NCBI GenBank assembly: GCA_965649765.1
Contig: OZ287761.1
Span: 21,452,001-21,516,000 of the forward strand
Direction of reading: 5' to 3'
Origin: Bispira polyomma
Taxonomy: Eukaryota
DNA: 64,000 nt
Positions within the stretch are counted from its first letter, which is position 1. Each line of letters begins with the position of its first letter. The notes beneath the pieces were generated by a model that saw only the letters and a list, made by a program, of their open reading frames with translations, did no database searches and was not told the origin of the DNA. The position numbers and the translations under genes were made by a program. Below, one piece after another: positions 4,699 to 63,183 of this stretch.

Positions 4699-4769
4699 AT
4701 ACACCAATGGATTAGTGGATGAGATAGAGGTGTGGTATGCCAGTAAAAACTACCTGATGCTGGATAAAA
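4699..4769 (+). CDS. Exon 1 (visible): end of a ConA/LamG-like module, YTNGLVDEIEVWYASKNYLMLDK
   Basis: tttacag acceptor and gtgagt donor; peptide parallels YPVVLFDDVQIWKAK at the end of the next exon; phase-1 end matches exon at 19538. Confidence 0.7.
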
Positions 4770-16700: not shown

Positions 16701-19700
16701 CCTATAAAGTCCATAGAAAATAGTCCAGGAAAGTGGGTACCAAAGTAAAATTGTTGTGTTGCTTTGGGTGACTTTGAATTTGGTTAGGTTTTTACATTGT
16801 TTTCAACAGCTTAAGTCATATCACGAGGGTGTCAGATTGAGTGGTGGAAGAAACCAGCGCTGAAGCCACTGTGTAAACCACCGACCCTACAGCAAAGTAC
16901 CTGCACAAACTTTACCCCAAATGAACGAACAAACAAAATTAGCTTCATATTCACTGGCCTCTCACCAATGTAGGTTCAAGTCCTATTTGTTCCTTCATGT
17001 GGCAAAGTTTTGTGAAGTACTTGCTGTACGCCAGTTGTTTACAGTCCTTTAAAACCAGCTTCTTCCAGTATTAAATCTGGCTGTCATGTTGTGACCTGAG
17101 CTGCTGTAAAGCAACTTCTATTGCCCAAATATATTACAAATATAAGTTACTGTTAAGATCCTGTACAGATCGAGTTATTGCTTTTGTGAATGTCTTTTTT
17201 TTTTTTCTTTTTTTTTTTAATATGGATATTTAACATCCACTCTAGTACTTGTTTGGGTTATATTGGGACGGGTAGTTGGAAACGTTTGAGGAAACACTGC
17301 ATACAGTTGATCAAGGTTCTGCACTGAAACCAGTGGCCCACAGTAAGGAACTACCACCTTTCCCACATAGGCATTGACGGGATTCGAACTCACGCCGCCC
17401 AGAGGTGAGAGACCAGTGATTGTGAAGCGCAATGCTTGCTAACCACTAGGCCACCGCGGCCCCTTGTGAATGTCTTAAGAGGCAAACATCTTCTCGGGCA
17501 TTCACAAAATGTCTTAACTTAGTCTTAAGTCCAACACTTTAGTCTTTGATTTTGACCAAAAAGTTTCTGGTGTGAGTCCCAGTGGCAGTAAGAACAGAAG
17601 ATCTTTAATTTTAGGAATAAAAAATACAAACAAGTGTTTTATGCGCATTTTAAACAAACGATGGGGTTGGTGTAATGCACGAAGCAAGAAGGGCTGAGTG
17701 TGTTAATTCATCCCCAGAGATCGTTTAAAATGTGCATAAAACGTGAGTTTAAGCATTTTATTCCTATTCTAAAATGATAAACCCATTATTTTTTATTGAA
17801 ATGAGCCCATGACACCTAAAACTTGTAACTACTACACAGGCGGCTCCATGTTTTGGCTGTTCCGTCATATAACGTATATGACAAAAAAGCTCAGAATTTA
17901 CTCGAGGTAAAAATTTAAATCTAGTATACTTCTATGCTCGATTTAAGCCTAAGACTTGGCCCTGGAGTACTTGTACAAAACAGAGTTCATTTTGCACAGA
18001 TAAAAACAGATGTTTCTGACAGATTTGAGCCTTTACCAGGGCTAAAAGCACAATGACTTGGAGTTAGGCAAGAAAACTAAATAGCTTGTTATTTTAGTTT
18101 AAGGTCTTTTTACATGTCTGTGGTTACGGTAACTTCCAGGAAAGTATATTATCCTGGAACAACAAAAAGAAAAAATGTCAAAACTTTTTTTAATAGTCTG
18201 CTGAGTGTTTTAAGTGCAGATAAGTATACCAAGATATATATGTGTACCTGAGACCTGGTTTGAGCAATAAAGTATTAAGTCACTCACTTCCATGGCAAAA
18301 GAGAGTCCTGAGATTTTCAAAGAGTTCTATATTGCAACAATGATTACAGTATGAGGGTAATATATATATATGTTAATCCATTCCACCTGAGGCCTTTATG
18401 TATATCTGTAATGAAAGATAATTTTTACTTTTAAATTTGTTTTAATCCAACACAACCTTAAATTCTAACATGTTACTTATGTCTAAATTATTCAAATCAT
18501 ATTAACCATATTAAATATATTCTATACTTGCCTAAGTATGTCATAGGTTTTTTATAAAGCCTCCTAAGGATGGCGATCGGGTCACCAAATCTGGAGTTCC
18601 CTGGAACCGTATTCCTGGATCTCGAGCTCAGACTCAACTTAAGTGAAGCCTGTTGGGAAATCCTTTGTACATGGAATAAACCTGTACTTGTGACCATTCA
18701 TTTTAATCAAGCTTTCAGTGCTGAATTCAAATATACAGTCATATTTGAAGTATCTTTACCACACCCAGAGATATTGCGACTTCAGAGACTGAGCTTGAGT
18801 CTGCCTTAAGCTTGATATCTTTCGAGTATACTTCCCTAGGACTCGGAAACATTGTTAAAGAGTTGAGTCAAAATGAGCGTCTTAGAGGATGATTTATATT
18901 TACATAAAACTGCTTCAGTAATGACGAATAATAATAATAATACATGTATTATATATTGAAAAGCCTCAATCACAATCCTTATATCTGTGTTATTGACTGC
19001 TATGTATTTGCTTTTACAAATAAACGTTTCTTTGATATCTGCTTTTTTGCTGCAATTTCTTTCTTTTATTTACAATATTTAAGCCGTTTTGCTACAGTAC
19101 AGATTGCTTTAGCTTTGCTTTTCCTGCAATATTTTTTTTTTTTGAAATTGCACATCAGCGGCTTTGTGTTCGATGGTCTTTATAATAATCACTTAGCACT
19201 ACTCTATATCTGACCCGCTACCTTTAATAACCCTTGCTTCAATACACCCTTGGCCCTATTTTTTACATTGACGGTTGATTTGCCCACATTTACATTTATA
19301 ACCACTATAAACCACTATATAACTATAATTATACCTTTCACACCTGTACCCCCACCTTCACACAGACATCGATTTCATCACCATTTCCATGTACCCGACT
19401 TCTCAGCTTTTTGTACCCTTGCTTCAGCACTCATGGCACCATTTTAATATATTGATATTTTTCCCCACACACCTATAACCACTATATGACCACCATAATG
19501 TTACCTTTCACACATATACCCCCCCATCTTCACACAGACATCGATTTCATCATCATCCCAATGGACGATATCCGTGACGACCGCATCGTGCACCCAGACC
19601 TCCGCATAGACACCTACGGTGGGCCCGTGATCACCAGGGGCGCCATCAATGGAGCCGTCTACCTCAACGGACGGGCCCAGTACGTGGATGGTGGTGAAGG

Positions 19701-22700
19701 GCTTATTTGCAACGGCAACATCGGACAGTGCACCCGCGGACTGACGTTCCGCTACAAGATCCGGCCGCGGGGGTTTGTCAACAACACTTACTACGTCTCC
19801 AGCGGTCCCGTAACGATGTACTACCTCAACGGGAAGATGCACGTCCAGGTACGATCGCCAAATCGTCAGTGGACGACCAGTTTCGACACTTCCACCTATT
19901 TACCAGATGACGCCTGGTCACAATTCGACCTCAGCTGGGAGGACGCGGATGGGCTAAGGATTTTCGTCAACGACCGCCAGGTGGCCTATCAAGCCGAGTC
20001 AGAGCCTTACGACACGGACGATTATGACCCCAAGGCCAGGTTTTACCTGGGGCGGAGGGGCGAGGGAGATGGAGGAGATGGAGATGGGGGTTATCCTGTG
20101 GTACTGTTTGACGACGTCCAGATCTGGAAGGCCAAGAGGGATATCGTGAAAGACAAGTTTCCGGGTAAGAGGGAAAAAAAAACACGGGCGAATAATGACA
20201 GTGGTTATATAACAAAATAAGGCCAATTGTAGGTTAACCTGTGGGGATAAACTGACATCCAAGAGCCACCAGCAGATAAAAAATTGTACTTAAGAAATAT
20301 ATATCGTTCATTATTTTTGTAGTTCTCCTAATTTTGCCAATATGATTTTAAAAATACAGTAAGGAATCCAAAATTCACCACTGTATCAGAAATTCGCCAC
20401 CTGGAAAATGTTGTCTTTTTTGTCGAATTGTAGGTAATATTTAACTGAAAGTTAAGATTTTTATGTCTACTTTGCATTATTTACACTAAATTCCAGTTAT
20501 TTTCCGCCAGTTTTTAATTGATTTGTCTTAAATTTTAGGGGGTGGCGAATTTCAGGTACAGTGGCGAATGTTAGATTCTTTACTCTACAGCAATGGCTGA
20601 GCCTTGTTTGTGATCCCTGAGTGTGAAATCCAAGCAACCAAACTGTTTGTGTATGATAATATTATAAACATGATGCATAATGTGCAAGTATGTATTACTA
20701 GAATACTAATTTGTGTGTGTGTAAATATATAATATATACACCATGGAATGCATCCTGTTACATACCTTGATGTGGTCTTGAGCAAATGACTACTTATCAA
20801 TGTGATGTTAAGGCACAGTTGAATGCATCCTGTTACACACCTTAATGGGGAGCTAATGACTACTTATCAATGTAATTTTAAGGCACAGTTGAAAACCCTT
20901 AAAGTCGATCCTCAAGGGATCAAGAGAAATACCTTTTACTTGAGCAGAAATTCCACTTAAACAGGGGGTAGATTTTTATAAAAGAAAAGATCTTTGTTGG
21001 GGCTGGGGGGAGGGCTAGATGTTTTGTCAACATTAAAAAGAAAAAGCACCTGCAACATACAGTTCTGTTTTAAAAATTGGTTAACAACTGTATTTAACAT
21101 TTGTGTATGAGAGTTTGATTACTAACATATACTTTGCATATTGAAGAATTGTTTTAGTCTATAGTGTTGGGTTAGTTTATATATATCCTTGTTAAATGTT
21201 TTAGTTGCAGGAGCCGCAAAAGCCCGACATATTTCCCTAGTTATGTTAAATTTCTTTTTCATATGGAAAATTTTTAGGTGGCAAATTTCACATCCATTAC
21301 AGCCAGCCTATTGATGGATGTTCAAAAGAGGAGCCTTGCACACAGCTCAGATATGTCTGTTCAGTATTGATCACACAGCAAAAAAAAATATAGAAAATTC
21401 ATTTTTGCCATTTTAACACTGTATTACATATCACTGACAAAAATGCATTCCTTAAGACTTAAGACGTTCCCTATCTGGTGCACTGAATGAGTGCGTTATT
21501 GTACAAAATTAGGCATTCTTTCTTGATAAATAAAAAAAATATACTAAATATATAGAGTAGAACCTCTATTATCCAACCATGCTTGGATCAAGATTATGTT
21601 TGGATAATAGAGAAGTTGATTAAACAGAAGAGAAGACATCTCTGTATAAATCAATAAAGGAAAACATAAATTTGGGAGAGAGTGGAAATGAGTTACTAAA
21701 AATAGAATATTCGGATATTGATAGAAGTTTGGATAACAGAGGTTCTACTGTAGTAGTTTCTCTTTGACGGAGGTTTTTCACAGGTTTATTGTGATCGACA
21801 TTTGTCCAGAAAATTATTGGTTTTAAACAACATTTTTATAATGTTGCCCACTTCATGCATGCCAATATAATAGTATTTAATCCCTTTAATTCATTAATTG
21901 TGTTGTAAATGTCTTCTGTTTCAGCATCATAATGCATATTTTAAATTTTTTCACTGAAAGAGCTATTAAAACCAACGGCAAAATGTGTTATGGTTTATTC
22001 GCATTGATAACAAATGTGTTTTTCTATTCGTAGAATTAGAGTTTAAGAATGAGGTGAAGTTGAACACCTTGGATTTGAAGATTGGTGTAATTTATTAAAA
22101 AAACATACGAATGTTTATGTTATCAACAGATTCTCGATGATCGGAACTGTTTTAGGACCCTGTTCTGATATTCCTTTTAACAATAAAAATTCTTTTGCAT
22201 CTTAGGTTTATAATTACTTTTAAACTACATCAGTCTGTCTAAAATATCAATGAGATGTATCCTCATTATTCTAACAGAAGAACCCACGGTCACTCCGCCC
22301 CCAGTGACCCCCAGACCGACTGTACCACCGGTCAGACCACAAACTAAGTACATCCTGTTAAATGGCAAGTACTGGATCACCTACAACTTCCCCGACCAGG
22401 ACATCTATGACATGTGAGTACAATATAATACAAGTATGAGAGGCCCAAATAATGTGCCCGGAGTAATCACAAAACGTCTAACTGGCGCAAATCTGGGTAC
22501 CCGCGCATTTAGTGTGAACCAATCTTAGAGACCCAGTCTAGCAATATGGCAGCTGATGTAAACCGAATCTATCAAACAAAAATATCTGGGAGAATGTTGA
22601 AAAGGTATAAGGAAAACGCATATTTACTGTAAAAAATAGACCTGAATTATTGTTTTAACAAAGTGAATTAGGATTATAGGCAATAATAACCAGAATACCT

Positions 22701-25700
22701 ACTATGTAATGTGAGTTTTGAAGGCTTTACAAACTGCCGACTACAGGACAATACACTACAGGTGACGACACGGCACTGCACGACAGTACTTTTCATATCA
22801 AACTAGGGCTGTAAGAGTACTTTTTGGTACCTCATTAAAGAATAGAGTAACGAAAATTAGGAAAAGAGTACTCTTCTTTTTTTTTTTGATATCAGAAGTT
22901 TTGTAAATATTGTCATAAAATTGACCTCAAGTGAACACTTAAATAGTAACTTTTAAAGATGAATTATGCAAATTCTGGCTATTTTTATGCTTGAAAGAGT
23001 ACTCTTTGAAGAGTAATGATGAAAGTGACTAAGTTGAAAGTGACATAAAGCCCAAATACATTCAAATTCTTATAGTATAATTTTAGTTTACCTTTTCTCT
23101 TGTTGCCAGTGACAACCCAAGACGTGAGGAGATCCAGTTCCAATTCCGTACTAACCGGACCACAGGGATGCTCTGGTACAGTGGGGATGAGCAGAGGAGT
23201 GCACACCTGGGGCTGAAGGTAAAAAAACCTCTATTATACGAACTGCTGATATATCTGGTAAATAGGTAAAAAAGTCTATTATACAAACTTCTGGTATATC
23301 TGGTAAACAGGTAAAAACCTCTATTATACAAACTTCTGTTATATCTGGTAAACAGGTAAAAACCTCTATTATACAAACTGCTGATATATCTGGTAAACAG
23401 GTAAAAACCTCTATTATACAAACTTCTGGTATATCTGGTAAACAGGTAAAAACCTCTATTATACGAACTGCTGATATATCTGGTAAACAAGTAAAAACCT
23501 CTATTATACAAACTTCTGGTATATCTGGTAAACAGATAAAAACCTCTATTATACAAACTGCTGATATATCTGGTAAACAGGTAAAAACCTCTATTATACA
23601 AATTTCTGGTATATCTGGTAAACAGGTAAAAACCTCTATTATACAAACTGCTGATATATCTGGTAAACAGGTAAAAACCTCTATTATACAAACTGCTGAT
23701 ATATCTGGTAAACAGGTAAAAACCTCTATTATACGAACTTCTGGTATATCAGGTAAACAGGTACAAACCTCTATTATACGAACTTCTGGTATATCAGGTA
23801 AACAGGTAAAAACCTCTATTATACGAACTTCTGTTATATCTGGTAAACGGGTAAAAACTATATATGAACTGCTGGTATATCTGAACACTTCGGGTCTAAA
23901 GGTAACAAAACCTATGTTTTATGAATTGCTGTATATATCTGAACACCTATGGTCTGAAGATAAAAACCTCTATTGAATTAACTTTGAAGATAAAGAGACT
24001 AACACATACTTCGTCTTGATAATAAATTCTGATATAGCAACATAGAACTGTATGATCTAGTACAGTATTGTATTGCTTATTTGCATTTTTCAGCACACCT
24101 TATTGATGCGAGGCATCTTCTAAAGCACAACAACTGAATCAATTTGCAATTCGAGAAGTTGTGCTTTAGAAGATGCCTCGCATCAATAAGACATGTTAAA
24201 TTAATATAATACAATAGAACAATATGATATCAGTATCTTTCTCTCTATTTTCAGAACGGTGACCTGTTGTTTGTGATTGAAGAGAACGGTGAGATTGTGG
24301 ACAGGTTTAGAATCACCCCGTCCAGGCCTCTCACTGACAACGAGTGGCATAATGTGATTATCAAGAGGAACAGGGGACAGGTGAGAGCGTATGAACTCGT
24401 AAAAATATATTAGTTGGTTACATGGGGCTATAGGTTGGATGGTTATACAGTTATTGGCATTACGTGATTATCAAAGAGGAACAGGTGAGAGGATGAACTG
24501 TCGTCTCGCTAGTTTGGTCAATAGTTTACTGATTAATGCAAACCACTAGCTTTCAGCAAGTCTTCTGCTAACTTTTCCCATATACATGCAAGGGGGGCCC
24601 GAGATGTGAACCTGTGACTGCAAAGGTGAGGGATGAGTATGTTACCACTCTACACCATCGAGGCCCTATTATGGCCCTGCCTTCTGTGATTAATTCAAAC
24701 CGCTAAGTTATCTTATTTTTTCTACTGTACAAGCACAGACAACCAGCACCAGTATCTGTCATTTGACCTTAACTTAAAGCTTGTATGTAAGAATGATTTC
24801 ATTAAAATTTGCCCTATTACTGAGAATAAGCGTCTAAATGCTTTCAACCCCAACAGAAAACTTTTGCCTGGAACTGCAGTAATTTCTTTCAGGTAATAGG
24901 TCACAGATAGCTTAATTCACTAAGACACATCACAAAGTAATTCCGGCATTCAATTATAGCTTCAATAATTTCCCTAAATGGGGATGTCTGCTGTACCTAG
25001 CTGTTCCTATTGTGAGCAACTGGAGGGAAAATAATAATATTTTTGCGCATGTCGACTATTAACAGACAGACTCGGGTTCTGGGAGTAACAAATGCCCTCA
25101 ATTGCCAGCTGACAACCTAGGTGTTGAAAGGGTTAAATAGTTTGTCAGCTTGATTACGTAATCGTTGGTATTTCTCAGGTGACATTTGACATTGACGGTA
25201 GACAAAACACCAAGCGTCTGACGAGTGAGGTGATCTTTGTCCCCGGCGACAAGCCTTTCCACCTGGGTGGAAGTTACGGTACTGACAGCATCAAGAGGAA
25301 CTTTGTTGGAAACCTGACAGAGGTTTGTCACTTATGTATAGTTATATACAGTCAAACCCATTTGAGTAGAACTTTCATAACTGGAATTACCTGTTAAGTA
25401 GGAGTTATTTTAAGGTCCCATTACTATACAGTGGAACCCTTAAAGTAGAACTATCTTAAGTACGTTTCCTTTTTATGTGGAGATAATTATGTAGTCACAT
25501 GAAGGCCTTTACTTTTAAATTCCACCCTGTTAACTGGGGAGTGTCAGTCACACTGTGCACCAACGTCTTTTTAAAAAGACAACTCTTGTTTTATTTGATA
25601 CTTTTTACTCTCACTCTCCAGGTTAAGGTCATTACTGGGGGCACAGACATCGACTTGGTCCGCCACTTCCTGTCTGACCCGAGACCCGATTGGATCACTA

Positions 25701-28700
25701 TTAACCAGGGTCAGCTGCCTACCCCGCGACCAGATGAAGTCGGAGTGACCTTCAGAAGTCCTGACGGGTTTATTATACTACCCAGGTACAGTATTTTAGC
25801 CCCCAGCATATACTCATAGGACATGGGTATTGTTTCGCACTCTGGTTGTCCTGATGGATGACCGGGGGCATGTTATTTGAACCCCTTCCCCACCGATGGA
25901 GAGTAATTCCACTATACTGAGGGAGAATACTTTGACACACTTTGATGGCATCACAAATAATGTTTTTTGCAACAACTGATTACATCATTAATGAAAAAAA
26001 AATATTTTTCTTCTATGTTTAAAGGACTGTACCTTATAGACTTTATCCCTCTGTTCAATAATATATTATGTCATTGACTTCTGGCCACAGGGTTCTCCAC
26101 CAAATAAATGCCCCTCCTGATATATAATACTGAGTTGTTGAAAGCTCCATTGAACTGTGCAAATTGATGTTATTTTGTTTTTTATTTAAATTAGGCCCAT
26201 TTTTCATAGAACAATGTTACAGTGTTAGAATTTAGTGATTGTAACTGTCACTTTTTTTCGTCCCCCTCCAGGTGGAGCTTCCTGCGCAGTGGGTCATTGG
26301 AGATGAAGTTCCGTACCCATGAACCTAATGCTCTGATGCTGTACAACGGGGGACAACCGGGCCGCAGCGACTTCATCGCCATAGAGATGTACGATGGGAT
26401 CCCTTACCTGGTGATTAACCTGGGTGAGGAGGTCCACAGATACCCCTTCTCTACAACCAAACTCAATGATGGGCAGGAACATCATCTACAGCTAGAAAGA
26501 ACCGAAAAGTAGGTGGAATCATTCTCTGTCGATATATCTTTTCCTATTAGAATTATATTCCTGGTTGGTTGTCTAGTTGACTGTCTGGTTGGTTTGTTGG
26601 CTGGATGGTTCATTGGTTGGTACCTTGGTAAGTTGCTTTATAATTAAGTGCAGAATGTACAAACTTGTTTATGAAAAAAACACCATTAGTAGGTCCTAAT
26701 TTGCACCTGTATAACGAACTGATCTTTATTCCTCTTTTATACAGTCAAACTAAATGATGGGGCGAGACATTATCTACTCAAGAAGAAGCTTAAAGTTTAA
26801 AAAACTCATAAAATCAGGCATTATATGTAACAAATCAGATGGTAGATTTGAAGTGGTCTTTGTGCAACCACAGACTTTTCCTCACCGGAAATGGATATAA
26901 AGAAGTGTATATTATCTCTACCATTATTTACACAGTCCCTCATTTTGTTTTGTTTTTGTTACACTCTTTCTATAGCAACATCCGTTTGGTCCTGGATGGC
27001 CGCTCCTCACCCTACACCATCCCCGGTAGTTCAAGTAGCCTTGACCTTGGTACCAAGCTCTATATCGGCGGCCATGACGACCCCCGAGTATTGCCATGGC
27101 ACCTGTGGAGCAGGGAGAGCAAGTTCTTTGTAGGCTGTCTGTGGGACGTCAAGGTCAACAACAAACCCTATGACCTGGCCTTCTATGCAAGGTTAGTATA
27201 AAGTCAAGCTCAACACCAAACCCTATGACATGACTTTATATGCAAGAATAGCATAAGGTCAAGGTCAACACCAAACCCTACAACCTTATCTTTTACACAA
27301 GGTGAGTAAAATCAAGGTCAACACCAAACCCCATGACCTGGCCTTTTACACAAGGTGAATATACAGTCAAGGTTAACACCACCCCCCACAACTGTCTCCT
27401 ACCTAAAGTCAGCTACAAAACCTACCACCTGACCTTTGCAAGATCAGTCAAGGTCACTGACAAACCATACGCCCTTTTATGCAGCGTGAGTCAAGACAAG
27501 GTCACATGCATGCTTAGAAATAGGAGGACCTGGGGCTAGATAAAGGCAGATACACAGTTACTTTAATGGCTTAGATGTCACAAATTAAAGTGGCTCTGTC
27601 CTCAGTCATTGGGTCCTATCCACACTTACAGGCGGAAAAATATGGGGACATTGATAAATAGTGTCATCTGCAAGCCTCTATCTTTAGCTTTGCGATACAC
27701 AATGTTTAAAAAACCTTTTGCCCCATGATATCTGTTACTTTGGCCTAGTCAGTGGTTAGTATTCGACTTCAGATCAGAAGGTTTCAGGTTGGATTCTTGC
27801 TGCTGATCTGGAGATTGTACCATCTCCACACAGGTGTATAAATGGTTATTTGGCTGATAATGTTGCTTGGTCTCTGCACTGTATGTGGCAGCATGGCTGC
27901 TTAGGGAGTATGGCTAGTATGAACAACTGGTTGACAGAAGAACCCAGGTTGAGGGTTTAAACCTTACCAGAGCTGATCACTTCACCTTCCACAAATTTGA
28001 ATTGGAAACAGATTACAATTTTAAATAACTTTGTCAATAATGTTGAGCATTAGAGGATGCGTTAATTAGGCGTGTTAGCAATCTATCCTGTCATGTCAGA
28101 CCATAAACATACACACACATTTACATTTACTACAGAGATCAGAACCCACGGTTTGAGAGCATCGTCCCTGGGTGTAGCCCCCAGTCGGAGGAATGTCCCT
28201 CCAAACCCTGCACTCACGGCATGTGTCACGAGACTTGGAGAGGGTACGAGTGTGACTGTACTGATACTCCGTACATGGGAAAAGACTGTGATATCGGTAA
28301 GTACACTCTCATTGGCAAGTATCTCTCGGTGAAAAATCTGACTCCATATTTAAATTCAGTATTGAAAGCTCTATTAAAATGAATGGTCTCAGAAATTGAA
28401 TTTAAAGGTAGACATAACTTCATTTGGCTAGAGTGAACCTAGGCAAAATCTGACTACATATTTAAAGTCACATAATATTCAAGACTCTTTGAAATATTAT
28501 TTATGTGTGTAACTGATACAGAAGCCATCTGATTAATGAAAGAAAATGATAATTATCGAATTTGTAACAACTATGCAGCTTTAAAGAGATTTTCATCGCG
28601 GAATTCAGATTTTGAGATGATTGTGAGTTTAAAAGCTTTGATAAATATGGCCTCTGGATTTTAACTTAGCATACTGAGTTCGGTTGCAGGAAGATACTGT

Positions 28701-34700: not shown

Positions 34701-37700
34701 TTATTGATTTTGTAGCCTATATTTATTATTTCTGTACACAAAGAGCTACAGAAATATCACTGATGTCAGGCAGGAAATCTATACAGTGAAATGTCCATAT
34801 TTTTTCGATGCATTGCCACGAACGATTAATGCATCGACTTAACAACTAATCGCCTTAGCTTTACTTATTTTTACTATTTAATAATTGATCTTGTATCCTG
34901 TATTTATGAATACAGAGGCAGAAGGCTACAGATATATGAGTGGCGGCAGTCAAGGAATCATGGAGTACCGTTTTGTACCTCCCATTGACACGAGTAGGGA
35001 TGAACTGGCCTTTGGCTTCATGACTTGGCAGCCCAACGGTACTTTGGTACGGGTGGACAGTGGCATATCAGCGGACTACATCGATGCTAGGCTGGTCAGT
35101 TATATCAATACAAAAAATACATTGAAAACCTATCTGGTTTACTCCCGTTATTTCCTCCCTGTTCACTAGTGGGTAAATTGTTTATCGATTTCACCAATAT
35201 TTATTGTTTTGGTCTTTACGTGCCGATATCGATGTGTAATACAAAACACATCAATATCATAATAGACACATATTACACCTTGGGACAACATTTATACAAC
35301 CATTTATAATGATATTTTATGGTTAACACCTTTCGAATAGTGTATGATGACCATTTTATTTCCACTTTTTCTTGTAAACATATTCAGCGGTTCTTACTTC
35401 TGGTTTCATTCGGGCAGATTTTTCGTTTTGCAGATACATTCCAGTTTCTTCACAACTTTCTTTTTATGTTCCGATATTGCCCGATTTTAAAGTAATTTTA
35501 CGTCAGATATCAATTTCCACCAACCCAAATAATTTACCCACTACTATAGAGCCTATTTGCATTTCAAAAAATTCACGGGAGCATTCAAAGTGGTCTTTAA
35601 GTAGGAGTGGACTGACTTTGAGAGTGGTCACTAGTACATGTACATGATTAAACTATTTCCCCCCCTTTCTCTCCCACCAGGTGAATGGCCACGTGGTGAT
35701 GTCGTGGGACATTGGTAATGGCCGTGAGGAGATCAGAGGGGACCAGCGTGGGTATAACGACGGAGACTACCATTACGTCACCTTTGTACGAGATGGCAAA
35801 ACAGCCACGGTCAGGGTGGATGACTACCCCTCTACAACCAAAACCTCAAACGGTAAGCTAATCTAATCTAACTTTTATAGCGGTTATCTCCAAGCTTCTT
35901 TGTAAAACAGATAAGTGAGGAGGCAGTGTCTACATATGCCAAAGCGAATTACAAAGCCAGGTACTACATCAAGCTCCTAGGGGACACGGTAGCCTTGTGG
36001 TTATAATTGTCTTGCTTTAATAACACTGACCTCTCACCTTTTGGGGATCGAATCCCACAAAATTTCCCACTCCTAAAATTTAAGCCAAATCAATAAAAAA
36101 TGGGTGAAAAATCAATGGAATTTAGGTATGTGTTTTGCAAAATAGTCACAAAAATCAGCAAATCTTACTCCACAAATTCAACAAAATAAACACAACATTT
36201 TCTAGGTGGCGAATTTCAGATACAGTGGCGAATTTTCGATTCCTTACTCTCTGGGCAAAAGCAAATTAGAAAGCCAAATTACAAAAGCCAGGGACTACAT
36301 TAAACTCCATGTCATTATATATTAGTGTCTATTTGTTTCAGGTAACAATGTTCTGTTCAGTGATCTAGCTGTCATCAGGGCAGGTGGAACTCGGGATATC
36401 AACAACAACATTGTCAACCCCTTTGACGGCATCATCTCAGGTCTGTACACACGTACTGGTGACCCATACATCCATACTGGGGGCATATCACTTCAATTCT
36501 TAGCATTTTTTTGGGGCCTCAGTCAATCAGATTCTTTGAGAAATATTTTCAGCCAATCAAATAGCTTGAGACAAACATTTAAGAATAAGAATCTTTGTCA
36601 ATACCAGTCCAGATCTGATGACTGATTTTGTGCACAGTTGACTGTAAGTGTTGTTAACAGTGTACCGGTATACCGCATTTTGTTTTGTTTGTACAACTAT
36701 GGCGAGCCCCGCTGTAAACTGCTGTGAATATCATATGTACACACGTGGTGATGACCTATACATATATACTGGGGCCTTATACACAAATATTTTTAGAATC
36801 CAATTCTTGTCTTGGCCTCAATCAGATTGTTTGAAAAAAGATATTTTCAGCCAATCAAATTGCTTGTGACAAAAATTAGGGAGTAAGAATCATTGTGAAT
36901 AGCAGCCTAGATCCAATGACTAATTGTGTGTACACAGTAAATTCTGTATTTAGTTGAATGTCCACTATCCACATGATTTGAATCTAGTTATGGATACAGA
37001 CAACTGATTGGAATTCTAGGAATAAGTAAAATACTTCTAATGTATACTTTTAAATTACACTCTGAAAATATGACAAATATATCAGTTAAAGTAAAAAGGT
37101 AAAAACCCTTTATTTAAATCAAGTAATTTATAATGTGACCCTTCCTTTATCAGATGCCTCGCATCATTAAGTTGCGTTAAAAATTTTAAAAAAATTTCAC
37201 AATACAACACAATATTTCTATTGGGATGTTTTCTCTTTTCTAGGTCTGTTCTTTAACGGGACCCGGTTCATTGACATGGGCGTCATTGACGGTTCACCGG
37301 CCATTGTCACCGGTGGAGACATCATCACAGCCACACATCCATTCAGTGTCCCTCAGTAAGTGTTGTACTATTACCAGTTACCATACAGCAGAAACATCTA
37401 AACAGTGCTACACTTTACTGCCAAAAACTGCTCATCTCTGAGCAGGAGTCAGATTTCCCTTGTCTCCCTCCCAAGTAATAAACCTGGCAGTTGGTGGGTG
37501 TTAAAACAACATCCACTCACTTTCCTGTGGTGCATCTGCTGATTAAAGTCTAAACATGTAATGTATGTGTATTTTCCTTAATGTCCAGTCTTATACAGTA
37601 TAGTGCATGTGTTTGATCACTTTATAACATACACACCATTTTGACGGGGAAAAAATGTTTGGAATAGAATAAACTGTAGTTTTAGTATTTATCTTATTAG

Positions 37701-40700
37701 TAAGTGATCAGCACTAAAGGTTGTATCATCAACAATAGTCATACATTGTATTTAAATTCCTATGATAGAGTACAACCTCTAGTATCCAAACATATTGGGA
37801 GAGCAAGAACTTGCTTGGATAATAAATATGACAAACATGTAATTATAGTAAAAAGGAATACCCTTTATTTAAAAAAATTTTATTTTGTTTTATACAGAAA
37901 TGCTTTTTCTATTTTATACACCTTTCAGTATCCTGCTGAAACTATTCTCCAAATAAACTAAAGCTAAAACTTATACTCAACTCAAATTTGGAATCACTAT
38001 ATTTCTGATTAAAATTTACCCTGTTAAGTAGAACAAATTTCGTTACGGTCTCTTCAGATTTAACTTATAACACAGGGTTAATACACTGTAATTTATTTCT
38101 AGGCCCAAACCGCCCAGTGAACAGCCGCCCGTAGTGACACAACCCCCTGGCGACGGTGTGACGCCAAAGGTCGACCCGCCCATAGTTGATCCGCCTGTAG
38201 TGGATCCACCCGTGGACATCCCCGTACCCCCGGATCATGGTGGGGGTGGGGTAGCTTGGGCGCCCGTCTATGCGGGGCCTGGGGCTCCGGGAGGAGGAAA
38301 TGGAGGCGGTGGAGGGGGAACAGGAGGCGGAAACGGAGGCGGAAATGAGGGAGACCCTATAATAATCATCGGCGGGGATGGAGATGGACGTCAGCCGGAC
38401 GGAATCGCCGTGGCGATGGATCCAGGAGGCGGTGGGGTGGCTCTGTGGGACGGCGGTCAGCCCGGATCGGTGCCGGGGTCGGTTGGTGGGCCTGTGGTAG
38501 GAGCTCAGGTAGGGGCCCCTATAGTAGGAGGAGAGGGAGGATCTAGGGCCGCTGGAGTGGCGGGGGCTTTTATAGGAGTGCTGGTGGCGGCCAGTTCTAT
38601 CATGTGGGCCGTGTACAAGTTTAAGCCGGGTCTCCTTGGAGGAGCAGGAGCGGGAGCGGGCAAAGGAGGGGGTGGAGCCATGAATATCTCATCGCCGTCG
38701 AGTTACAAACTTCTCAAACCCGCGGCTGGTGGTGGCGGAGGTGGCCCGGGCGTGGGCTATACCTACACTGCCGCAGGTGGTGGTAGCGTGGTCGCCATGG
38801 ATATGAATGGCGCACCGCCCAGAGGTGGAGGTGCCTACGCCAAATCCATGTCCTCCTTCGGCACCCAGACGATGCTCGCAGGCGGTGCCTTAAACTCCAA
38901 CGAGTTTGCCAGCACATCCGGCGCTTCGATGAGCGGGATCGCAGGCGTCATCGCTGGCGGTGGGGCTGTTACCAGGGCAACCCAGACGAACCTGTCGGCG
39001 TTCAGCGGAGCTGGAGGCTACGGCTTGGCCAATGCAAATACATCATTATCTGCCAGCTCCATGAACGGCTATTCACATTTCGGGGACAACGCTGCTGCCA
39101 CCTCTACCCTGATGAAGGAATCCTACCACAAGTCCTACTACGAGTCGACCGTGGACGGGAACGTCTACTCGGCGGGCCGTGTAACTTCCGTCGCCAAGGA
39201 CCCAGCACCTGTGGGCTTGACGGAGATCGCGACCCAGACAGTGAGCAATGCGGGTACGCAGACGTTCGACGCAGACGAGGCCGCTTCGGTGACAGGATTA
39301 GGAGGAGGAGGAATGTACTCATCGGGTGGAAGTTACGTGGAGACCGGCTCTCAATATGGCGGTGGTGGTGCTTACAGCCAGACTCTGCCCCACGGTGGAG
39401 GGGGAGGAGGCATGCAACAGCAGAGTTACTACAAGGAGTCGGTATCTACCGTCAACCAGATGAATACTCTACCAGTCTTGCGTCAACAGCCGCAGCTACC
39501 ACCGCAACAACAGCTGCAGCCTGCATATCCACAGGTAGGGGGGTGTTCAGAGAATCTGTACTTAAAAATGGTTTATTATTTATTTGTTGTATAAGCGTTG
39601 TCCTAAGGTGAAATAGGTGTCGTGTATAACATTGATATACTGTTAGTATTTCACACCGATATTCGCACCCAAAAGTCCAAATAATAAATTCAGTGAGAAA
39701 CCTCTATGATCTGAAACATGTTGGGAGAGCAATATTTTGTTCAGATAATAGAATGTCTGTAAAATTGAAGAGGCATTTTAGTTTCAGGGTTTCAGAAAAA
39801 GGCTCAAAACACATTTGTATCAGCTCTCTTTTCCACCTTATCATGCCATCTGATGGTCACGACTGAATCTCCGATCACGAACCTTTACCGTCTACCGGAC
39901 TATGCTCTTGCACACTGACTAGGATATGCGTCATCGATTGTGGCGCTATAAAAGTAAAAACATTAATATTATCAACCAATAGGAAAATGAAAATTTGGGA
40001 AAGTGAAACTGTGTTCGTAAAATCGAATATTTGTATCATGGAGTTCTGCATTGTTAAAAAATTTACCTACTATATGTACTGTACGTGGTTAACGCACTAG
40101 CCTCTCACCTCTAGGGATGTAGGTTCAAAACTTTGCCACAGCTTTATGTGGGAAAGTTGGCAGTTACTTGCTGATGCACTGCTTTCCACCGACCAGTAAA
40201 GTAATGTGTTGTAAGCGACATTAAAACCCCAATCAATCAATCAATGTACCTATTGTTACACCCTTATTTTCCACAGGCAGCGTATGCTGATTCCGGCTAC
40301 CGTGCTGCGATGCAGAACCTGCACATGAATGCCACCAACCTGTTTGGTGCTCAGAGCGCCGAGAACCAGGCCGCGGGATTGATGATGACTTCAGAGGAGA
40401 TACGGGTGGACTGCGCCATGTTGACACAGAATGGGCGCTACGTGGTGACGGGATCCATCTACGGACCCCCACAGATCTGGGACATGAAGGTAAGAAGGGC
40501 ATGTCCAAACCAACACCAATCAGCAGCAGTTAATGTTATCCAAACGATCTCTAGCTCAAACTGAAAGTACACAAGATCTCGGGCTTGAATATGGTCAAGT
40601 TAAAATCTGGCTTCATACACTCCAACCCATTCATGTAGAACTCTGATAAGTAGAATTACCTCTTACTTAAAAGTTATTCTAAAGTCTGATTGCTATATTT

Positions 40701-43700
40701 TGAATTAAAAATTTACTCTGTTAAGTAGGATTCCTGTTGAATAGAACAAATTTTTATGGTCCCTTCAGATTCGACTTAACAGGATGCCACTGTATTTGAA
40801 TTCAGTGAACGGTAACGGAGAACTGTATGTGTATATAACATGTGCAAGGGTCTACATGTAGTCTCCATTGAAGTTAAGTCTGGGTTTAAGTCTCTTTGGA
40901 GAATAACCCGCCCCAGATTCCTATTTTCAAAGCATTTAGTTAAAAAATTTTTAAACACTTCTTTGGAAAATGTAGACTCAATAAGTAATACGTTAGTATG
41001 AATTAATACATTCACCCTTATCAAACTGGGTACCCTGGTCTATTTTTGATGAATTGCTGTATAGTCCCTGGCAGTCGGGGGCCATTCTTTAATTTTGATG
41101 AATGACTATATTTTCTCATCACAGATGAATTACTGTATTTTCTCATCACAGATGAATTACTGTATTTTCTCATCACAGATGAATTACTATATTTTCTCAT
41201 CACAGATGAATTACTGTATTTTCTCATCACAGATGAATTACTGTATTTTCTCATCACAGATGAATTACTGTATTTTCTCTTCACAGATGAATTACTATAT
41301 TTTCTCATCACAGATGAATTACTATATTTTCTCATCACAGATGAATTACTGTATTTTCCATCACAGACCCATGTGCCCATATGTAATTTGTTCTAATGAA
41401 TTACTGTATTCTCTCTTACAGACGGGTGCCCTTGTGCGTCTGATGGAGGGAGATGACATGAGTTCCACTGACCTTCACCTTGCCTGTAATGACAGCCTCC
41501 TGGTCGGTCAAGTGGCGGAGATGACCCAGGTCAACCAGCGGGACATGGCCCGAGGCATTCACCACAGGAAGCTACAGGTGAGTAGTAGCTTTTGTGTGTG
41601 TCTTTGGTCTGGTTTTTAATTGGAATATTTAACTTCCACTTTAGTACTGTTTAGGTTATATTGGGACGGGTAGTTGGAAACGCTGGAGGAAACACTGCAT
41701 ATAGTTGATCAAGGTTCTGCAGTGAAACCAGCGGCCCACAGTGTTGAACTACCACCTTTCCCACATAGGCATCGACGGGAGTCAAACTCACGCTGCCCAG
41801 AGGTGAGAGACCAGTGATTGTGAAGCGCAATGCTTGCTAACCACTAGGCCACTGCGGCCCCGTCTTTGGTCTGATAATCAGTGTTTAATTGATGTACAAA
41901 CAAATTATACCAGAAGAGTAATTTCTGACACTGAATAATGTAATATGGGCGTATTTTCAATATACAGTTTTATAGTAGGGCGAGGTCTTAAACAAGACTG
42001 TAAAACTTGTACAAACCCCCATTTTTTTGTGCTCCAGTTTATGTCTTACTATCAAGGGTGTGTGTTATAACTGTGTAAAATTTTTATGAAGGAATTTGAT
42101 TGGCTGGTCAAATTGCCACAAAGCAAATTGATTAGCTAAAAATACGAAAATTCTAAAAAATGCCCACGCTGATAGGTTTTCTTGCAGTCGTACTTTCACT
42201 GTTTTCTCTCTCCCTGTATTTTTTTTCACCCCTCAGATCTGGGACTTTGACACGGGCACCCCTCTGTACATTACGTCTTTAGCTCATAGTTTTCTCCTAG
42301 GTATTCTCACCGTTTTCTTTCTGCCTGTATTTTTCAGATCTGGGACTGTCCCCCACCTCCTTCTCCCAGCTGGACATGGCCCACAGCTCATAGTTTTCTC
42401 CCAGTCATTCTCTCTGTTCTCTTTCTGCCTTTATTTTTCAGATCTGGGACTGTCCCCCCTCTCCCGGACATGGCCCACAGCTCATAGTTTTCTCCCAGTC
42501 ATTCTCTGTGTATATGGCCCCAGGTATTCTCACTGTGTTGTGTCTTTCTATATTTTTCCTTAGATCTGGGACTTTGACACGGGCGCCCCACTGGACATGC
42601 ACAACAGCGAGTCCTGCACGGCCAGCGCCATGATGAACGACGGTACGCGCATCGTGCTGGGCCGCACAGAGAAGTACGGCAACAGCACCACCATTGTGAT
42701 CTGGGACCTGCTGGGCAACCAGCCTCTCCGCCGGATCCACTACGAGGGCTCCATAGGGTTCGCCGACTACATCAGCATGCTGAAACTGTCGCTGGACAAC
42801 CGCTACGTGATCGCCGGCTTCCAGAACTCCTACGACGGAAAGGCCAACTACCTGATCTTCGACCTCACAGTGGACGACTACACGAGCCACGACCCCAAGA
42901 TTCTATCGCTGGACGCTGTCGCCGAATGCTCCGCCATCTTGGATAACCACGAGGTCGTCACGGGCACGAGGGCCGGTCAACTGACCATCTGGAGCGCCCG
43001 CACGGGCAAGGCCCTGCGTCAACTGGTGTCCCCGGCCCAGCTACCGCTTGGAGGAGGAGCGGCTTCCTTAGGTAGGCCCATGGCGAGGTCGGCCCACACG
43101 CGAGAGGTAAAGGCCGTGGAGCTGTCACATGATCGCCGACTGCTGGTGTCGGTGTCTGCGGACCACACGGTGAAGGTGTGGAACCTGGAGAATGAGCGGC
43201 TGATGTTTACACTGAAGGGACACACTGATGAGGTAAGGGTTATTGGAGAAAGTGTGCACATGTGGTAAAGAATGGATTGTAGGGCGGCAATTAGTAGCCA
43301 TTTTTGTACAAAAATAGCCAGAATTTGAATGATTTTTTGTTTAAAGTTACAAAAAAATATTCATTTGAGGTCAATGTTATGACAATATTTGAAAAACTGT
43401 GAATAGCAAATAAAAAAAAAGTACTCTTTTTCCTAATTGTGTACTCTGAATAGTTCATCGCTCTATTCTTTAATCAGTACTCGATTAATCTTTACAGCTT
43501 TAATGGATTGCACATAATTATTGCTGTGTAAGATAATTTCATTTTTGTTCCTGACGATTTTCAATCCTAGTTCGTCAATCTTTGACTAAAAATACTTTCT
43601 TTAGCAGAAAAATAGCCAATAATAAAAATTTATTTCAGTGAATCTCTCAAAAGTTTTTTTCAAGTACCTGCTTCAAAATTACCGGCCTCTCCACCAAATG

Positions 43701-44205
43701 TCAGTTTAAATTTCAGTTTGTTCCTTTGTGTGAGGAAAGTTTTTGAGAATAATGAAAGTGACATTAAATTCCAAACCTGAGATAATCTAACTTTTAGGGC
43801 ACTTCTCTCCCTGCTAGCAGATTCTAAGTTGTATATGAGGCGGAAAAGGAGCCACAGCAAATTCTATATTGTATTTGTGGTTTTTCCTACACTCAGGTTC
43901 TGTGCTGCACTATTTCCAACGATGACGAGATTCTGGTGACTGGCGGCAAGGACGGCTCCATCCGCCTGTGGCGCCTGCAGACTGGTCAGCACGTCTGTAG
44001 CTTCAACACGGGCGTAGACATCTTCACGGTCAAGATGAGCTCTGACCGCCGCACCGTGGTCGCCCTGGGTGACCGGGAGGGGGCCCGCAAACTCATCATG
44101 TTACGAGTGGTTGTCACAAAGGTGAAGAGTCGGGCGGGAAGTAGGGCCACCTCACCCACCAGTCTACAGTCTACTGACGGAGGATATCACTACTCCCCAT
44201 ACTGA
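4699..44205 (+). CDS. 5'-incomplete 26-exon gene: ConA/LamG-like modules + alpha-neurexin-like ectodomain (5 LNS, 2 EGF) + TM + low-complexity tail + WD40 repeats, ~2170 aa
   Basis: join(4699..4769,19538..20164,22278..22413,23110..23218,24255..24380,25179..25322,25622..25785,26272..26508,26976..27191,28136..28296,28748..28965,29347..29455,30012..30172,31380..31545,31898..32052,32789..33050,33859..33978,34916..35094,35681..35852,36342..36440,37244..37355,38103..39534,40277..40489,41422..41577,42564..43232,43897..44205). All introns GT-AG, all phases compatible, no internal stop, exons much more GC-rich than introns. Confidence 0.85.
6609..6870. repeat. Tandem repeat, ~76 bp x ~3.5
   Basis: CTATATAATGC recurs at 6609, 6685, 6761 and ~6835. 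Confidence 0.85.
8420..9135 (+). mobile_element. Two SINE family 3 copies (8420..8635 and 8915..9135)
   Basis: shared head CTTCACAATCACTG...GGGTTCGAAT and shared body with the 2705 copy. Confidence 0.75.
9252..10458 (+). mobile_element. Non-autonomous PIF/Harbinger-like DNA transposon carrying a MADF exon
   Basis: TIRs AGGTCCAGACACACAGA.CCGCATCCGGATC / GATCCGGATGCGGGTCTGTGTGTCTGGACCT; flanks TAA and TTA; inserted into a CTTATACTTAGAATAAG MITE. Confidence 0.8.
9494..9662 (+). pseudogene. MADF (Myb/SANT-like) DNA-binding domain exon of the Harbinger-like element
   Basis: LIEEVCAYPSLFDKATREYRDKVKNEGISKGIAEKL matches the MADF pattern; the usual Trp positions appear substituted. Confidence 0.7.
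10480..10910. repeat. AT-rich foldback/palindromic MITE complex
   Basis: 10480-10590 is an imperfect reverse complement of 10757-10910 (TTCACTAAAGTTCTTATACT...AGTATGAGAACTTTAGTGAA); internal repeats of CTTATACTTAGAATAAGAATCATT. Confidence 0.75.
11485..11675. mobile_element. MITE family B, Tc1/mariner-type (TIR CAGTAGAACCTCTATTATCC, TA flanks)
   Basis: TA|CAGTAGAACC...GGTCTACTG|TA; other copies at 21555..21750, 34485..34693, ~46660..46840. Confidence 0.8.
11808..12047. mobile_element. MITE family A (TIR AGTAAGGAATCTAAAATTCGCCACTGTATCTGAAATTCGCC)
   Basis: ~40 bp TIRs; other copies at 13447..13684, 20358..20584, 32083..32305, ~36060..36248 (partial), 48038..48274. Confidence 0.85.
13957..14193. 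mobile_element. MITE family C (TIR GGGCCCGTATTCTCGAACGTATACTCAGCTTAAACTC)
   Basis: near-perfect ~38 bp TIRs; copies at 45666..45906 and a degraded one at ~18600..18830. Confidence 0.85.
14291..14613. repeat. Degenerate tandem repeat, ~60-65 bp x ~5
   Basis: recurring AGCCAGGACAAATTAATGCATTGAAC...AACCAAAA...AAACTCAATTTAT. Confidence 0.8.
17197..17463 (-). mobile_element. tRNA-derived SINE, young family 1
   Basis: A box TGGCCTAGTGG, B box GTTCGAATCC, poly(A) tail, 13-bp TSD TTGTGAATGTCTT at 17184-17196 and 17464-17476. Confidence 0.92.
19538..20164 (+). CDS. Exon 2: ConA-like/pentraxin-type LamG domain
   Basis: cacacag acceptor, CCGG|gtaaga donor; GAINGAVYLNGRAQYV..CNGNIGQCTRGLTF..WSQFDLSW...GLRIFVND...FYLGR...FDDVQIW. 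Confidence 0.88.
20358..20584. mobile_element. MITE family A copy
   Basis: same TIRs and internal sequence as 11808..12047. Confidence 0.85.
21555..21750. mobile_element. MITE family B copy
   Basis: GAGTAGAACCTCTATTATCC...GGATAACAGAGGTTCTACTG with TA flanks. Confidence 0.8.
22278..22413 (+). CDS. Exon 3: Pro/Thr linker and start of LNS domain
   Basis: EEPTVTPPPVTPRPTVPPVRPQTKYILLNGKYWITYNFPDQDIYD; ctaacag acceptor (NAGNAG), gtgagt donor. Confidence 0.85.
23110..23218 (+). CDS. Exon 4: LNS (laminin G) domain part
   Basis: DNPRREEIQFQFRTNRTTGMLWYSGDEQRSAHLGLK, with the LNS-type FRT..GML motif. Confidence 0.88.
23219..23880. repeat. 45-bp minisatellite x ~14.5 starting at the exon 4 donor
   Basis: unit GGTAAAAACCTCTATTATACAAACTTCTGGTATATCTGGTAAACA. 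Confidence 0.95.
24099..24190. repeat. Perfect 33-bp inverted repeat with 26-nt loop, formed from two LINE/SINE 3' ends
   Basis: CTTATTGATGCGAGGCATCTTCTAAAGCACAAC / GTTGTGCTTTAGAAGATGCCTCGCATCAATAAG. Confidence 0.9.
24255..24380 (+). CDS. Exon 5: LNS domain part
   Basis: NGDLLFVIEE...LTDNEWHNVIIKRNRGQ, with the D.EWH.V motif. Confidence 0.9.
25179..25322 (+). CDS. Exon 6: LNS domain part
   Basis: VTFDIDG...PFHLGGS...NFVGNLTE. Confidence 0.9.
25622..25785 (+). CDS. Exon 7: LNS-LNS junction
   Basis: VKVITGGTDIDLV...VTFRSPDGFIILP; resembles the neurexin LNS3 start (TF.TPE.FI.LP.W). Confidence 0.88.
26272..26508 (+). CDS. Exon 8: neurexin LNS3-like
   Basis: WSFLRSGSLEMKFRTHEPNALMLYNGG...DFIAIEMYDGIPYLVINLG...LNDGQEHH. 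Confidence 0.92.
26976..27191 (+). CDS. Exon 9: LNS C-terminal part
   Basis: PYTIPGSSSSLDLGTKLYIGG...LPWHLWS...FVGCLWDVKVN. Confidence 0.92.
28136..28296 (+). CDS. Exon 10: EGF-like domain
   Basis: CPSKPCTHGMCHETWRGYECDCTDTPYMGKDC, six-Cys neurexin-type EGF. Confidence 0.93.
28748..28965 (+). CDS. Exon 11: LNS4-like
   Basis: HTNDISLRFKTFKKDGLLFKTS...DTLQLSLENGKGRL. Confidence 0.92.
29347..29455 (+). CDS. Exon 12: LNS part
   Basis: TMYFCDKLNNNEWHTLYVKRRADHLEAWVDNCPKST. Confidence 0.9.
30012..30172 (+). CDS. Exon 13: LNS end
   Basis: TLDVDNIVV...FVGTMQNFYFNKNNLFE. Confidence 0.88.
30254..30645 (+). mobile_element. SINE-like element with a tandemly amplified tRNA-like head (47 bp x 4) and a LINE-like tail
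   Basis: unit GGTGATCAGAAGGTCCCTGGTTCAACTCCCAGTGGGCGAGTTGGTCT at 30254, 30301, 30348, 30395; tail AGAAGATGCCTT...AATACAACACAAT. Confidence 0.7.
31380..31545 (+). CDS. Exon 14: LNS5-like start
   Basis: KVTYRSNANNYVVLDPLQMVSGLDMAMMFKTRHPDGILFFNEGK. Confidence 0.9.
31898..32052 (+). CDS. Exon 15: LNS part
   Basis: GDYITAYLSDGHLFFV...VNDNKWHQIRI. Confidence 0.9.
32083..32305. mobile_element. MITE family A copy
   Basis: AGTAAGGAATCTAGAATTCGCC...GGCAAATTTTAGATTCCTTACT. Confidence 0.85.
32789..33050 (+). CDS. Exon 16: LNS end
   Basis: LDLTDPLYIGGLEEDMYRTLPNLVSSRKSYSGCLAT...ITQGC. Confidence 0.92.
33859..33978 (+). CDS. Exon 17: EGF-like domain
   Basis: CKAAPCSHFGRCVEMLNGYRCDCNMTSFIGSVCDE, neurexin EGF3-like CDC.MTSF.G..C. 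Confidence 0.93.
34485..34693. mobile_element. MITE family B copy with internal 15-bp array (CCCTCTATTATCCGA x ~8, 34493..34610)
   Basis: TIR subrepeat amplified in tandem. Confidence 0.8.
34916..35094 (+). CDS. Exon 18: LNS6-like start
   Basis: DTSRDELAFGFMTWQPNGTLVRVDSGISADYIDARL. Confidence 0.92.
35681..35852 (+). CDS. Exon 19: LNS6-like
   Basis: YNDGDYHYVTFVRDGKTATVRVDDYP. Confidence 0.92.
36342..36440 (+). CDS. Exon 20: LNS6-like
   Basis: NNVLFSDLAVIRAGG...NPFDGIIS. Confidence 0.87.
37244..37355 (+). CDS. Exon 21: LNS6 end
   Basis: GLFFNGTRFIDMG...IVTGGDI. Confidence 0.87.
38103..39534 (+). CDS. Exon 22: Pro-rich and Gly-rich stalk, TM helix (38548..38616), Gly/Ser/Gln-rich cytoplasmic region
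   Basis: 1432 nt GC-rich open exon; AAGVAGAFIGVLVAASSIMWAVY followed by KFK stop-transfer; CCACAG|gtaggg donor. Confidence 0.9.
40277..40489 (+). CDS. Exon 23: start of WD40 region
   Basis: VDCAMLTQNGRYVVTGSIYGPPQIWDMK. Confidence 0.9.
41098..41366. repeat. 27-bp minisatellite x 10 made of the exon 24 acceptor
   Basis: unit ATGAATTACTGTATTTTCTCATCACAG versus real acceptor ATGAATTACTGTATTCTCTCTTACAG. Confidence 0.95.
41422..41577 (+). CDS. Exon 24: WD40 region
   Basis: TGALVRLMEG...RKLQ, joining in frame to IWDF of the next exon. Confidence 0.88.
41612..41861 (-). mobile_element. tRNA-derived SINE, family 1
   Basis: 12-bp TSD GTCTTTGGTCTG at 41600-41611 and 41862-41873; high identity to the 17197 copy. 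Confidence 0.92.
42564..43232 (+). CDS. Exon 25: WD40 repeats
   Basis: IVIWDL, LTIWS, AHTREVKAVELSHDRRLLVSVSADHTVKVWNL, LKGHTDE. Confidence 0.93.
43897..44205 (+). CDS. Exon 26 (terminal): last WD40 repeats and stop
   Basis: VLCCTISNDDEILVTGGKDGSIRLWRL...YHYSPY* (TGA at 44203-44205). Confidence 0.92.
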   Translation, partial: VLCCTISNDDEILVTGGKDGSIRLWRLQTGQHVCSFNTGVDIFTVKMSSDRRTVVALGDREGARKLIMLRVVVTKVKSRAGSRATSPTSLQSTDGGYHYSPY

Positions 44206-58121: not shown

Positions 58122-58261
58122 GCTAGCTTGTCAACAGGGAAAGGTAATTAGTGGTGAAGGAGGAATTCCTTAACTTTTGTAGATCATCTTCATTAACATC
58201 CTTCCCACACAATTTGAGATAGTTATCTCTCCTATTCAAACACAAATTCCCTGTCAATGTC

Positions 58262-59484: not shown

Positions 59485-59501
59485 TATTAATTTTCTTATA
59501 T

Positions 59502-62606: not shown

Positions 62607-63183
62607 TTACATCTTGGTTTCTGCTGAAATTGGAGTGGGATATATTTCATCATAAGCTGGTGGCATGGGTATATCAAACTCAGTTTCGTATGCAGGTGGC
62701 TTTGGGCCAGATCTTGCATACTGAAGCAAGCCAGGCTGATCTGGAGGTCCCTGCTCTCTTCCAATGGAGTCAATCTGGCCAGAGGCATTGAATTCCGGCT
62801 GTACTTCTAAATTGTTCACCAAAGCTTGGCGTCCAGAGGTTTGCGTTGTAAACAATTGTTGAGTGGATGGCCTGCTACTTGACTGTGTGGACGCATGGTT
62901 TCCCACAGTATTATGGTGGATGGGGTAACCTGGTCTCAACTCGTGGGCACTGTATTCAGATTCTCTCGATGAGATAACATCACTCTCTACAGGGATAAAG
63001 TGCCGGTTCTGGACTCCGTGGGATATTGCATGTGTGTTACGGCTGTGTTTTGGGGCCTGGTGTAACCGTGTGTTGTTACTGCTGAATACCCCAAGACTAA
63101 CTGTTCCAAAACCCCTCCGCTGAGGCTGGGTGGTGCCATGATGAACACGCTGTTGTCTTTTCATTCTTGCCTTTTTGTTACAC
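62607..63183 (-). CDS. Probable terminal exon: cytoplasmic tail of a membrane protein with two PPxY motifs
   Basis: GC-richer open frame CNKKARMKR...KPPAYE...PPAYDEIY...ETKM*; possible acceptor caaag|G at 63184; upstream exons not identified. Confidence 0.55.

Follow-up and report, generated by a model that had tools for sequence, protein, structure and literature searches.

A neurexin-like gene with an intracellular WD40 domain in Bispira polyomma is very probably a member of the PHRED-1 family

The window, a 64,000-nucleotide stretch of the Bispira polyomma genome (G000:C14:21452001-21516000), carries on its forward strand a run of 25 exons between positions 19538 and 44205. A splice-site scan by coordinate found an AG acceptor and a GT donor on each exon. 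When joined by coordinate, the exons gave a single frame of 2149 aa with a terminal stop only; the other two frames contained 99 and 109 stops. The 25 consecutive phase-compatible exons proposed by the sequence-only reading were thus borne out. That reading had also singled out a phase-0 junction between donor 39534 and acceptor 40277. Both sites are indeed in phase 0 and the intron between them is 742 nt long, the flanking exons being 21 and 22 by our recount rather than 22 and 23.

The gene model over 19538-44205 proved incomplete at its 5' end. Using full-length homologues as guides in 200 kb of upstream DNA, we found 12 further exons, one inside the window and eleven before it, whose borders were chosen by hand on the basis of phase and homology. 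The full model comprises 37 exons encoding 3485 aa and begins 45 kb upstream with an ATG at C14:21406937. It is colinear with the proteins P0310 from Owenia (35% over 2612 columns) and P0318 from Patella (34% over 2713), and the added exon within the window showed 50% identity to aa 1281-1308 of P0310. The features of the gene are listed in Table 1.

Table 1. Features of the gene; positions are those of the window unless a contig is named.
Feature	Position	Strand	Basis or remark
Exons 1-11 of 37: signal peptide, LNS1, EGF-like Cys-rich segment, LamG3-like repeats 1-5	G000:C14:21406937-21448652		Upstream of window
Exon 12 of 37, 71-nt coding: end of LamG3-like repeat 5	4699..4769	+	AG/GT; phase 2 in, 1 out; fits exon 19538
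LamG3 (ConA-like)-type repeat 6	19538..20164	+	29-34% identity to three upstream exons; matches PF13385 repeats of Owenia P0048
7 exons: Pro/Thr linker, LNS2, LNS3	22278..27191	+	Laminin_G_2 E 5e-14 on exon 26272-26508
EGF-like domain (EGF2)	28136..28296	+	PF00008 E 5e-4; repeat of EGF3
6 exons: LNS4 and LNS5	28748..33050	+	Pfam; matching P0205 stretch against neurexin-1-alpha E 5e-161
EGF-like domain (EGF3)	33859..33978	+	Sequence; repeat of EGF2
4 exons: LNS6 (beta-neurexin-type domain)	34916..37355	+	Exon 34916-35094 matches neurexin-1 LNS6
Large exon: Pro/Gly stalk, TM helix, Gly/Ala/Ser-rich cytoplasmic linker	38103..39534	+	
Single TM helix, then family-wide W-A-x4-K-P-G juxtamembrane motif	38557..38613	+	
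Four TQT motifs, candidate LC8/DYNLL sites	38863..39264	+	At 38863, 38980, 39232, 39256
Phase-0 GT-AG intron, 742 nt	39535..40276	+	Missing in two related genomes
WD40 beta-propeller, aa 1741-2122	40394..44121	+	Exons 40277-40489, 41422-41577, 42564-43232, 43897-44205
Ser/Thr-rich C-terminal tail and stop codon, without neurexin-type PDZ ending	44122..44205	+	Similar Ser/Pro/Tyr tail in P0205

The encoded protein has a type I membrane layout, in the order signal peptide, LNS1, Cys-rich EGF-like segment, six LamG3-like repeats, LNS2-LNS3-EGF-LNS4-LNS5-EGF-LNS6, stalk, TM helix, linker and WD40 domain. From LNS2 onward this is the order described at first (LNS-LNS-EGF-LNS-LNS-EGF-LNS, stalk, one TM helix, low-complexity sequence, WD40), which had overlooked the extra LamG3-like domain encoded by exon 1 of the 25. 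The signal peptide, judged by inspection, is a hydrophobic segment following the first Met in the upstream exon at C14:21406937. LNS1 was matched by Laminin_G_2 in Pfam (E 4e-19), and the end motif of the LamG3-like repeats recurs at aa 475, 683, 897, 1109, 1318 and 1526 of the 3485-aa model. Exon 1 of the 25 is similar to three upstream stretches, and PF13385 matches another. Run exon by exon, Pfam placed Laminin_G_2/1 on exons 7, 8 and 15, EGF on exon 9 and WD40 on exons 24 and 25; no match was obtained for exon 1, the TM exon or exons 22-23 taken singly.

Exon borders have often been duplicated locally in this gene. Degenerate tandem copies of its own splice ends flank several exons (23223-23883, 27148-27392, 28921-29224, 31240, 42237, 42338 and 42442); the last three are extra acceptor copies belonging to exon 42564, the first of them in frame. 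A 27-nt tandem repeat of 10 copies at 41097-41367 holds nine acceptor-like sites (41125-41341), stop-free and in frame with exon 41422. Splicing to these sites would add 27-99 aa within the first propeller blades; they are probably a by-product of duplication.

Downstream of the gene, a LINE-like reverse transcriptase fragment lies on the minus strand at 58941-59423, among further transposon-like frames (57190-60480). A 249-aa open frame on the same strand (62610-63356), with a hydrophobic start, a C-terminal PPAY motif and no Pfam match, is probably the last exon of a neighboring membrane-protein gene. Upstream, frames at G000:C14:21302791-21311906 resemble a DEG/ENaC channel gene by eye. Elsewhere in the genome, an array of at least 14 Laminin_G_3 exons at G000:C5:39917577-40004875 (+) represents another long LamG3-repeat gene.

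The single TM helix spans aa 1376-1394 of the 2149-aa frame, with a best 19-residue hydropathy of 2.11. The roughly 306 aa of low-complexity sequence noted after it were confirmed as aa 1396-1701, that is, 306 aa to the end of the exon (20% Gly, 12% Ala, 12% Ser), and the whole low-complexity linker from the TM helix to the propeller measures 345 aa. Four TQT motifs occur in this linker against 0.11 expected (p ~1e-5, 100000 shuffles). Related sequences have three (L034), two (P0205) and one (L042), and none was found in the linkers of molluscs, Owenia or flatworms among the homologues compared.

The neurexin-like part and the WD40 part almost certainly form one fused gene, a call that for this species is based on comparative sequence rather than RNA. 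In a close relative (L034, ENA ERZ22147071), stalk, TM helix, linker and first WD40 blade form an unbroken genomic ORF, which is 70% identical to the window protein over aa 1224-1772, with the WD40 exon 92% identical; in a more distant genome (L042), the TM helix through the first WD40 blade is likewise one genomic ORF. Because the junction is continuous in both, the 742-nt intron is absent from them, and its gain in the lineage of the window is the simpler reading. Three further contigs of 4.5-5.7 kb (L036-L038, library type unstated) encode everything from LamG to WD40 in a single ORF free of introns, as would be expected of spliced transcripts. LamG, TM and WD40 also lie in one chain in about 25 annotated proteins, which come from gastropods and bivalves, from Owenia and the bryozoan Watersipora, and from Schistosoma and Spirometra; they share W-A-x4-K-P-G at the end of the TM helix, and their WD40 block is 42-63% identical. 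The one-ORF junctions, the intron-free contigs and the homologues together uphold the proposed single gene, whose neurexin-derived product crosses the membrane once and carries WD40 on its cytoplasmic side. A search for RNA runs from this species gave none, and three sequencing runs neither support nor refute splicing over 36300-41000, because their contigs cover the introns like DNA, without splice joints. That a neurexin-like gene should instead end after the TM exon beside a separate soluble WD40 gene is scarcely credible: Met codons in exon 22 just before the propeller would in principle permit an internal start, but the junction is a continuous genomic ORF in L034 and L042, the intron-free contigs carry the fusion, some 25 independent annotations from four phyla join both parts, and a planarian cDNA clone held LamG, EGF, TM and WD40 by itself (bioRxiv 10.1101/131789).

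The C-terminal part had been described as about 450 aa consisting mostly of WD40 repeats; some 382 of the last 448 aa form the propeller. Modeling of the Owenia orthologue predicts a complete eight-bladed propeller: its WD40 block, modeled from an alignment of 29 sequences, gave about 31 strands in eight groups (pLDDT 85.9, pTM 0.85), and the fold is extended by homology to the block of the window, which is 53% identical to that of Owenia without large gaps. The best structural matches of the model were ODA16/DAW1 (Z 34.3), Rsa4/NLE1, TBLR1 and Fbw7 (Z 31-34), all of which we take to be eight-bladed propellers. They share the fold, with an rmsd of ~3 A over ~315 residues, but are soluble proteins of 19-22% identity, and a shared function is not implied. 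An ESM Atlas search returned generic WD40 clusters only. The suggested link to NWD1/NWD2-type proteins did not hold, as PF23586 scored 17 bits against a cut-off of 33, and the homologues scanned gave no match to a NACHT domain.

Full-length homologues were found in Owenia, Aplysia, Patella, Mytilus, Watersipora, Schistosoma and Spirometra. Among these, the proteins of Owenia fusiformis (CAH1790210.1), Patella caerulea (KAK6166927.1), Mytilus californianus (XP_052079469.1) and Aplysia californica (XP_012941838.1, “neurexin-1”) have the same domain order and TM motif, and their WD40 blocks are 49-53% identical to that of the window; unlike the window protein, they have no TQT motifs. In a maximum-likelihood tree of the WD40 block, the window paired with P0205 (98/95) and fell within neither the mollusc group (100/100) nor the flatworms, a placement that suits a non-molluscan lophotrochozoan host, probably an annelid. 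A profile search of the genome with the family WD40 block gave E 3e-84 at the window locus and 2e-14 at the next locus, a generic WD40 piece (C3, L002); because the next match is only at that level, the PHRED-1-family gene looks single-copy.

The length of the ectodomain varies widely across the family. Owenia P0048 has several extra tandem LNS copies (aa 1730-2700) before the last EGF. Short forms of about 1800 aa, from Aplysia, Sinanodonta, a Logan contig and Mya (P0085, P0192, P0193 and P0411, respectively), have their own signal peptide directly before LNS2; the Aplysia entry XP_012941838.1 and several bivalve entries are of this short type. They skip LNS1 and the LamG3 block and may reflect an alternative promoter or a short paralogue; a scan of the intron 20165-22277 found no signal-peptide exon for such a form.

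By sequence comparison, the locus is paralogous to alpha-neurexin. As in NRXN1-3, the ectodomain runs LNS1-EGF, LNS2-LNS3-EGF-LNS4-LNS5-EGF-LNS6, stalk and TM helix, so that six LNS and three EGF-like units stand in alpha-neurexin order; unlike in alpha-neurexin, six LamG3-like repeats interrupt the first cassette of (LNS-EGF-LNS)x3. In LNS6, the Ca2+ Asp of neurexin has a retained Asp counterpart, and the position of neurexin's Ca2+-binding Asn is Ser here and variable across the family. The cytoplasmic side differs further, as alpha-neurexin has a short tail with a C-terminal PDZ ligand (PMC10084454) and the window protein has a tail of ~755 aa with a WD40 propeller instead. The canonical neurexin of this genome is a separate gene (L040, G000:C2:32821000-33001500), whose LNS exons occupy C2:32.86-33.0 Mb and whose short tail ends in EWYV. 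PF01034 matches C2 and C11, where a syndecan tail lies at C11:15346074 (L039), and does not match the window locus.

It is very improbable that the locus is itself the true alpha-neurexin of the animal, binding neuroligin at synapses and extended by a tail. The nearest solved structure to the ectodomain of the closest homologue, P0205, is indeed neurexin-1-alpha (E 5e-161), databases call the homologues “neurexin-1”, and the LNS6 Asp is retained. Against this, the genome has its short-tailed neurexin on C2, the PDZ ending is lacking at the window locus, the LNS6 Asn position is not conserved, and planarian PHRED-1 is a muscle protein whose loss left neuron counts unaffected (bioRxiv 10.1101/131789).

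The sequence-only reading did not recognize the architecture from a characterized family. This claim of novelty fails because the combination of LamG, EGF, TM and WD40 was already published by Adler and Sanchez Alvarado in 2017 (bioRxiv 10.1101/131789; the journal version is Dev Biol 427:165, 2017, according to the reference list of PMC6453901), who named PHRED-1, a transmembrane LamG+EGF+WD40 protein, as a distinct family with 14 homologues, all lophotrochozoan. Planarian PHRED-1 (Schmidtea mediterranea, dd_Smed_v6_4789) is encoded by an 8-kb transcript and has 2536 aa with a signal sequence, six LamG domains, nine EGF domains, a TM segment and three WD40 repeats detected by SMART. The gene is expressed in muscle and induced by wounding within 12 h; a Western blot showed one band of >270 kD, with the antigen on muscle fibres, and RNAi left fibres thickened and mispatterned (bioRxiv 10.1101/131789). 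An independent RNAi study also reported a body-wall muscle phenotype for phred-1 (PMC6453901). Beyond the founding paper and this one RNAi confirmation, no later mechanistic work on PHRED-1 was found in the literature searched.

The window protein shares with PHRED-1 an N-terminal signal sequence, several extracellular LamG and EGF domains, a single TM helix and a conserved intracellular WD40 domain in the same chain, which over ~380 aa is 42% identical to those of Schistosoma and Spirometra and 46-53% identical to those of molluscs and Owenia. All named LamG+WD40 matches in a word-based, non-exhaustive search came from molluscs, an annelid, a bryozoan and flatworms, in keeping with the lophotrochozoan-only homologues of PHRED-1. 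We conclude that the locus is very probably a PHRED-1-family member, linked through the Schistosoma homologues and the architecture, with planarian PHRED-1 itself compared by description. Taken as a whole, the evidence is best explained, with high confidence, by a paralogue of alpha-neurexin, the only PHRED-1-family member found in the genome.

Several features nevertheless set the window protein apart from planarian PHRED-1. It is longer (3485 versus 2536 aa), has three EGF-like units rather than nine, and carries both the TQT cluster in the linker and six LamG3-like repeats between LNS1 and LNS2, the latter common to Owenia and molluscs; eight blades are modeled where the PHRED-1 paper counted three WD40 repeats. 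Schistosoma P0236 shows no evident long LamG3 block. Because flatworm ectodomains differ in EGF number and in this block, function may have diverged.

We lean slightly towards a role as a muscle adhesion scaffold, by analogy with planarian PHRED-1. The long LamG/LNS ectodomain would bind matrix glycans or a partner on neighboring cells, and the propeller, which occupies the place of neurexin's short PDZ-binding tail, would bind peptide motifs of cytoskeletal or adaptor proteins from its flexible tether. It would thereby replace the CASK/PDZ link of true neurexins, and muscle fibres would be anchored and spaced as a result. In the lineage of the window, it is possible, if doubtful, that LC8 joins the linkers of two molecules by binding their TQT motifs. 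LC8 usually anchors on TQT, but the motif does not suffice for binding, and many peptides that contain it fail to bind (PMC6607443). Only tentatively may the disordered linker be viewed as a multivalent platform on which LC8 would dimerize and stiffen the tails and keep the eight-bladed propellers, as a pair, at a fixed distance from the membrane, in a lineage-specific variant of PHRED-1.

A PHRED-1 member might instead act as a signaling receptor, its propeller recruiting signaling or ubiquitin-ligase partners or being cleaved off, rather than as a structural anchor; we consider this main rival unlikely, though not negligible. In vertebrates, neurexins undergo shedding and intramembrane cleavage. 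Eight-bladed propellers such as Fbw7 and TBLR1 have regulatory peptides as ligands, although likeness of fold does not establish function. The induction of phred-1 by wounding would also suit a signaling role, whereas the single large band on the planarian Western blot, the antigen on muscle fibres and the structural nature of the planarian phenotypes argue for the adhesion scaffold (bioRxiv 10.1101/131789).

The locus is a new member of a known, little-studied family. Databases mislabel members of this family “neurexin-1”, an error that can skew neurexin trees for molluscs, annelids and schistosomes. To the family, the locus contributes a complete gene model, a predicted eight-bladed propeller, a LamG3 block common to Owenia and molluscs, and a testable LC8 lead.
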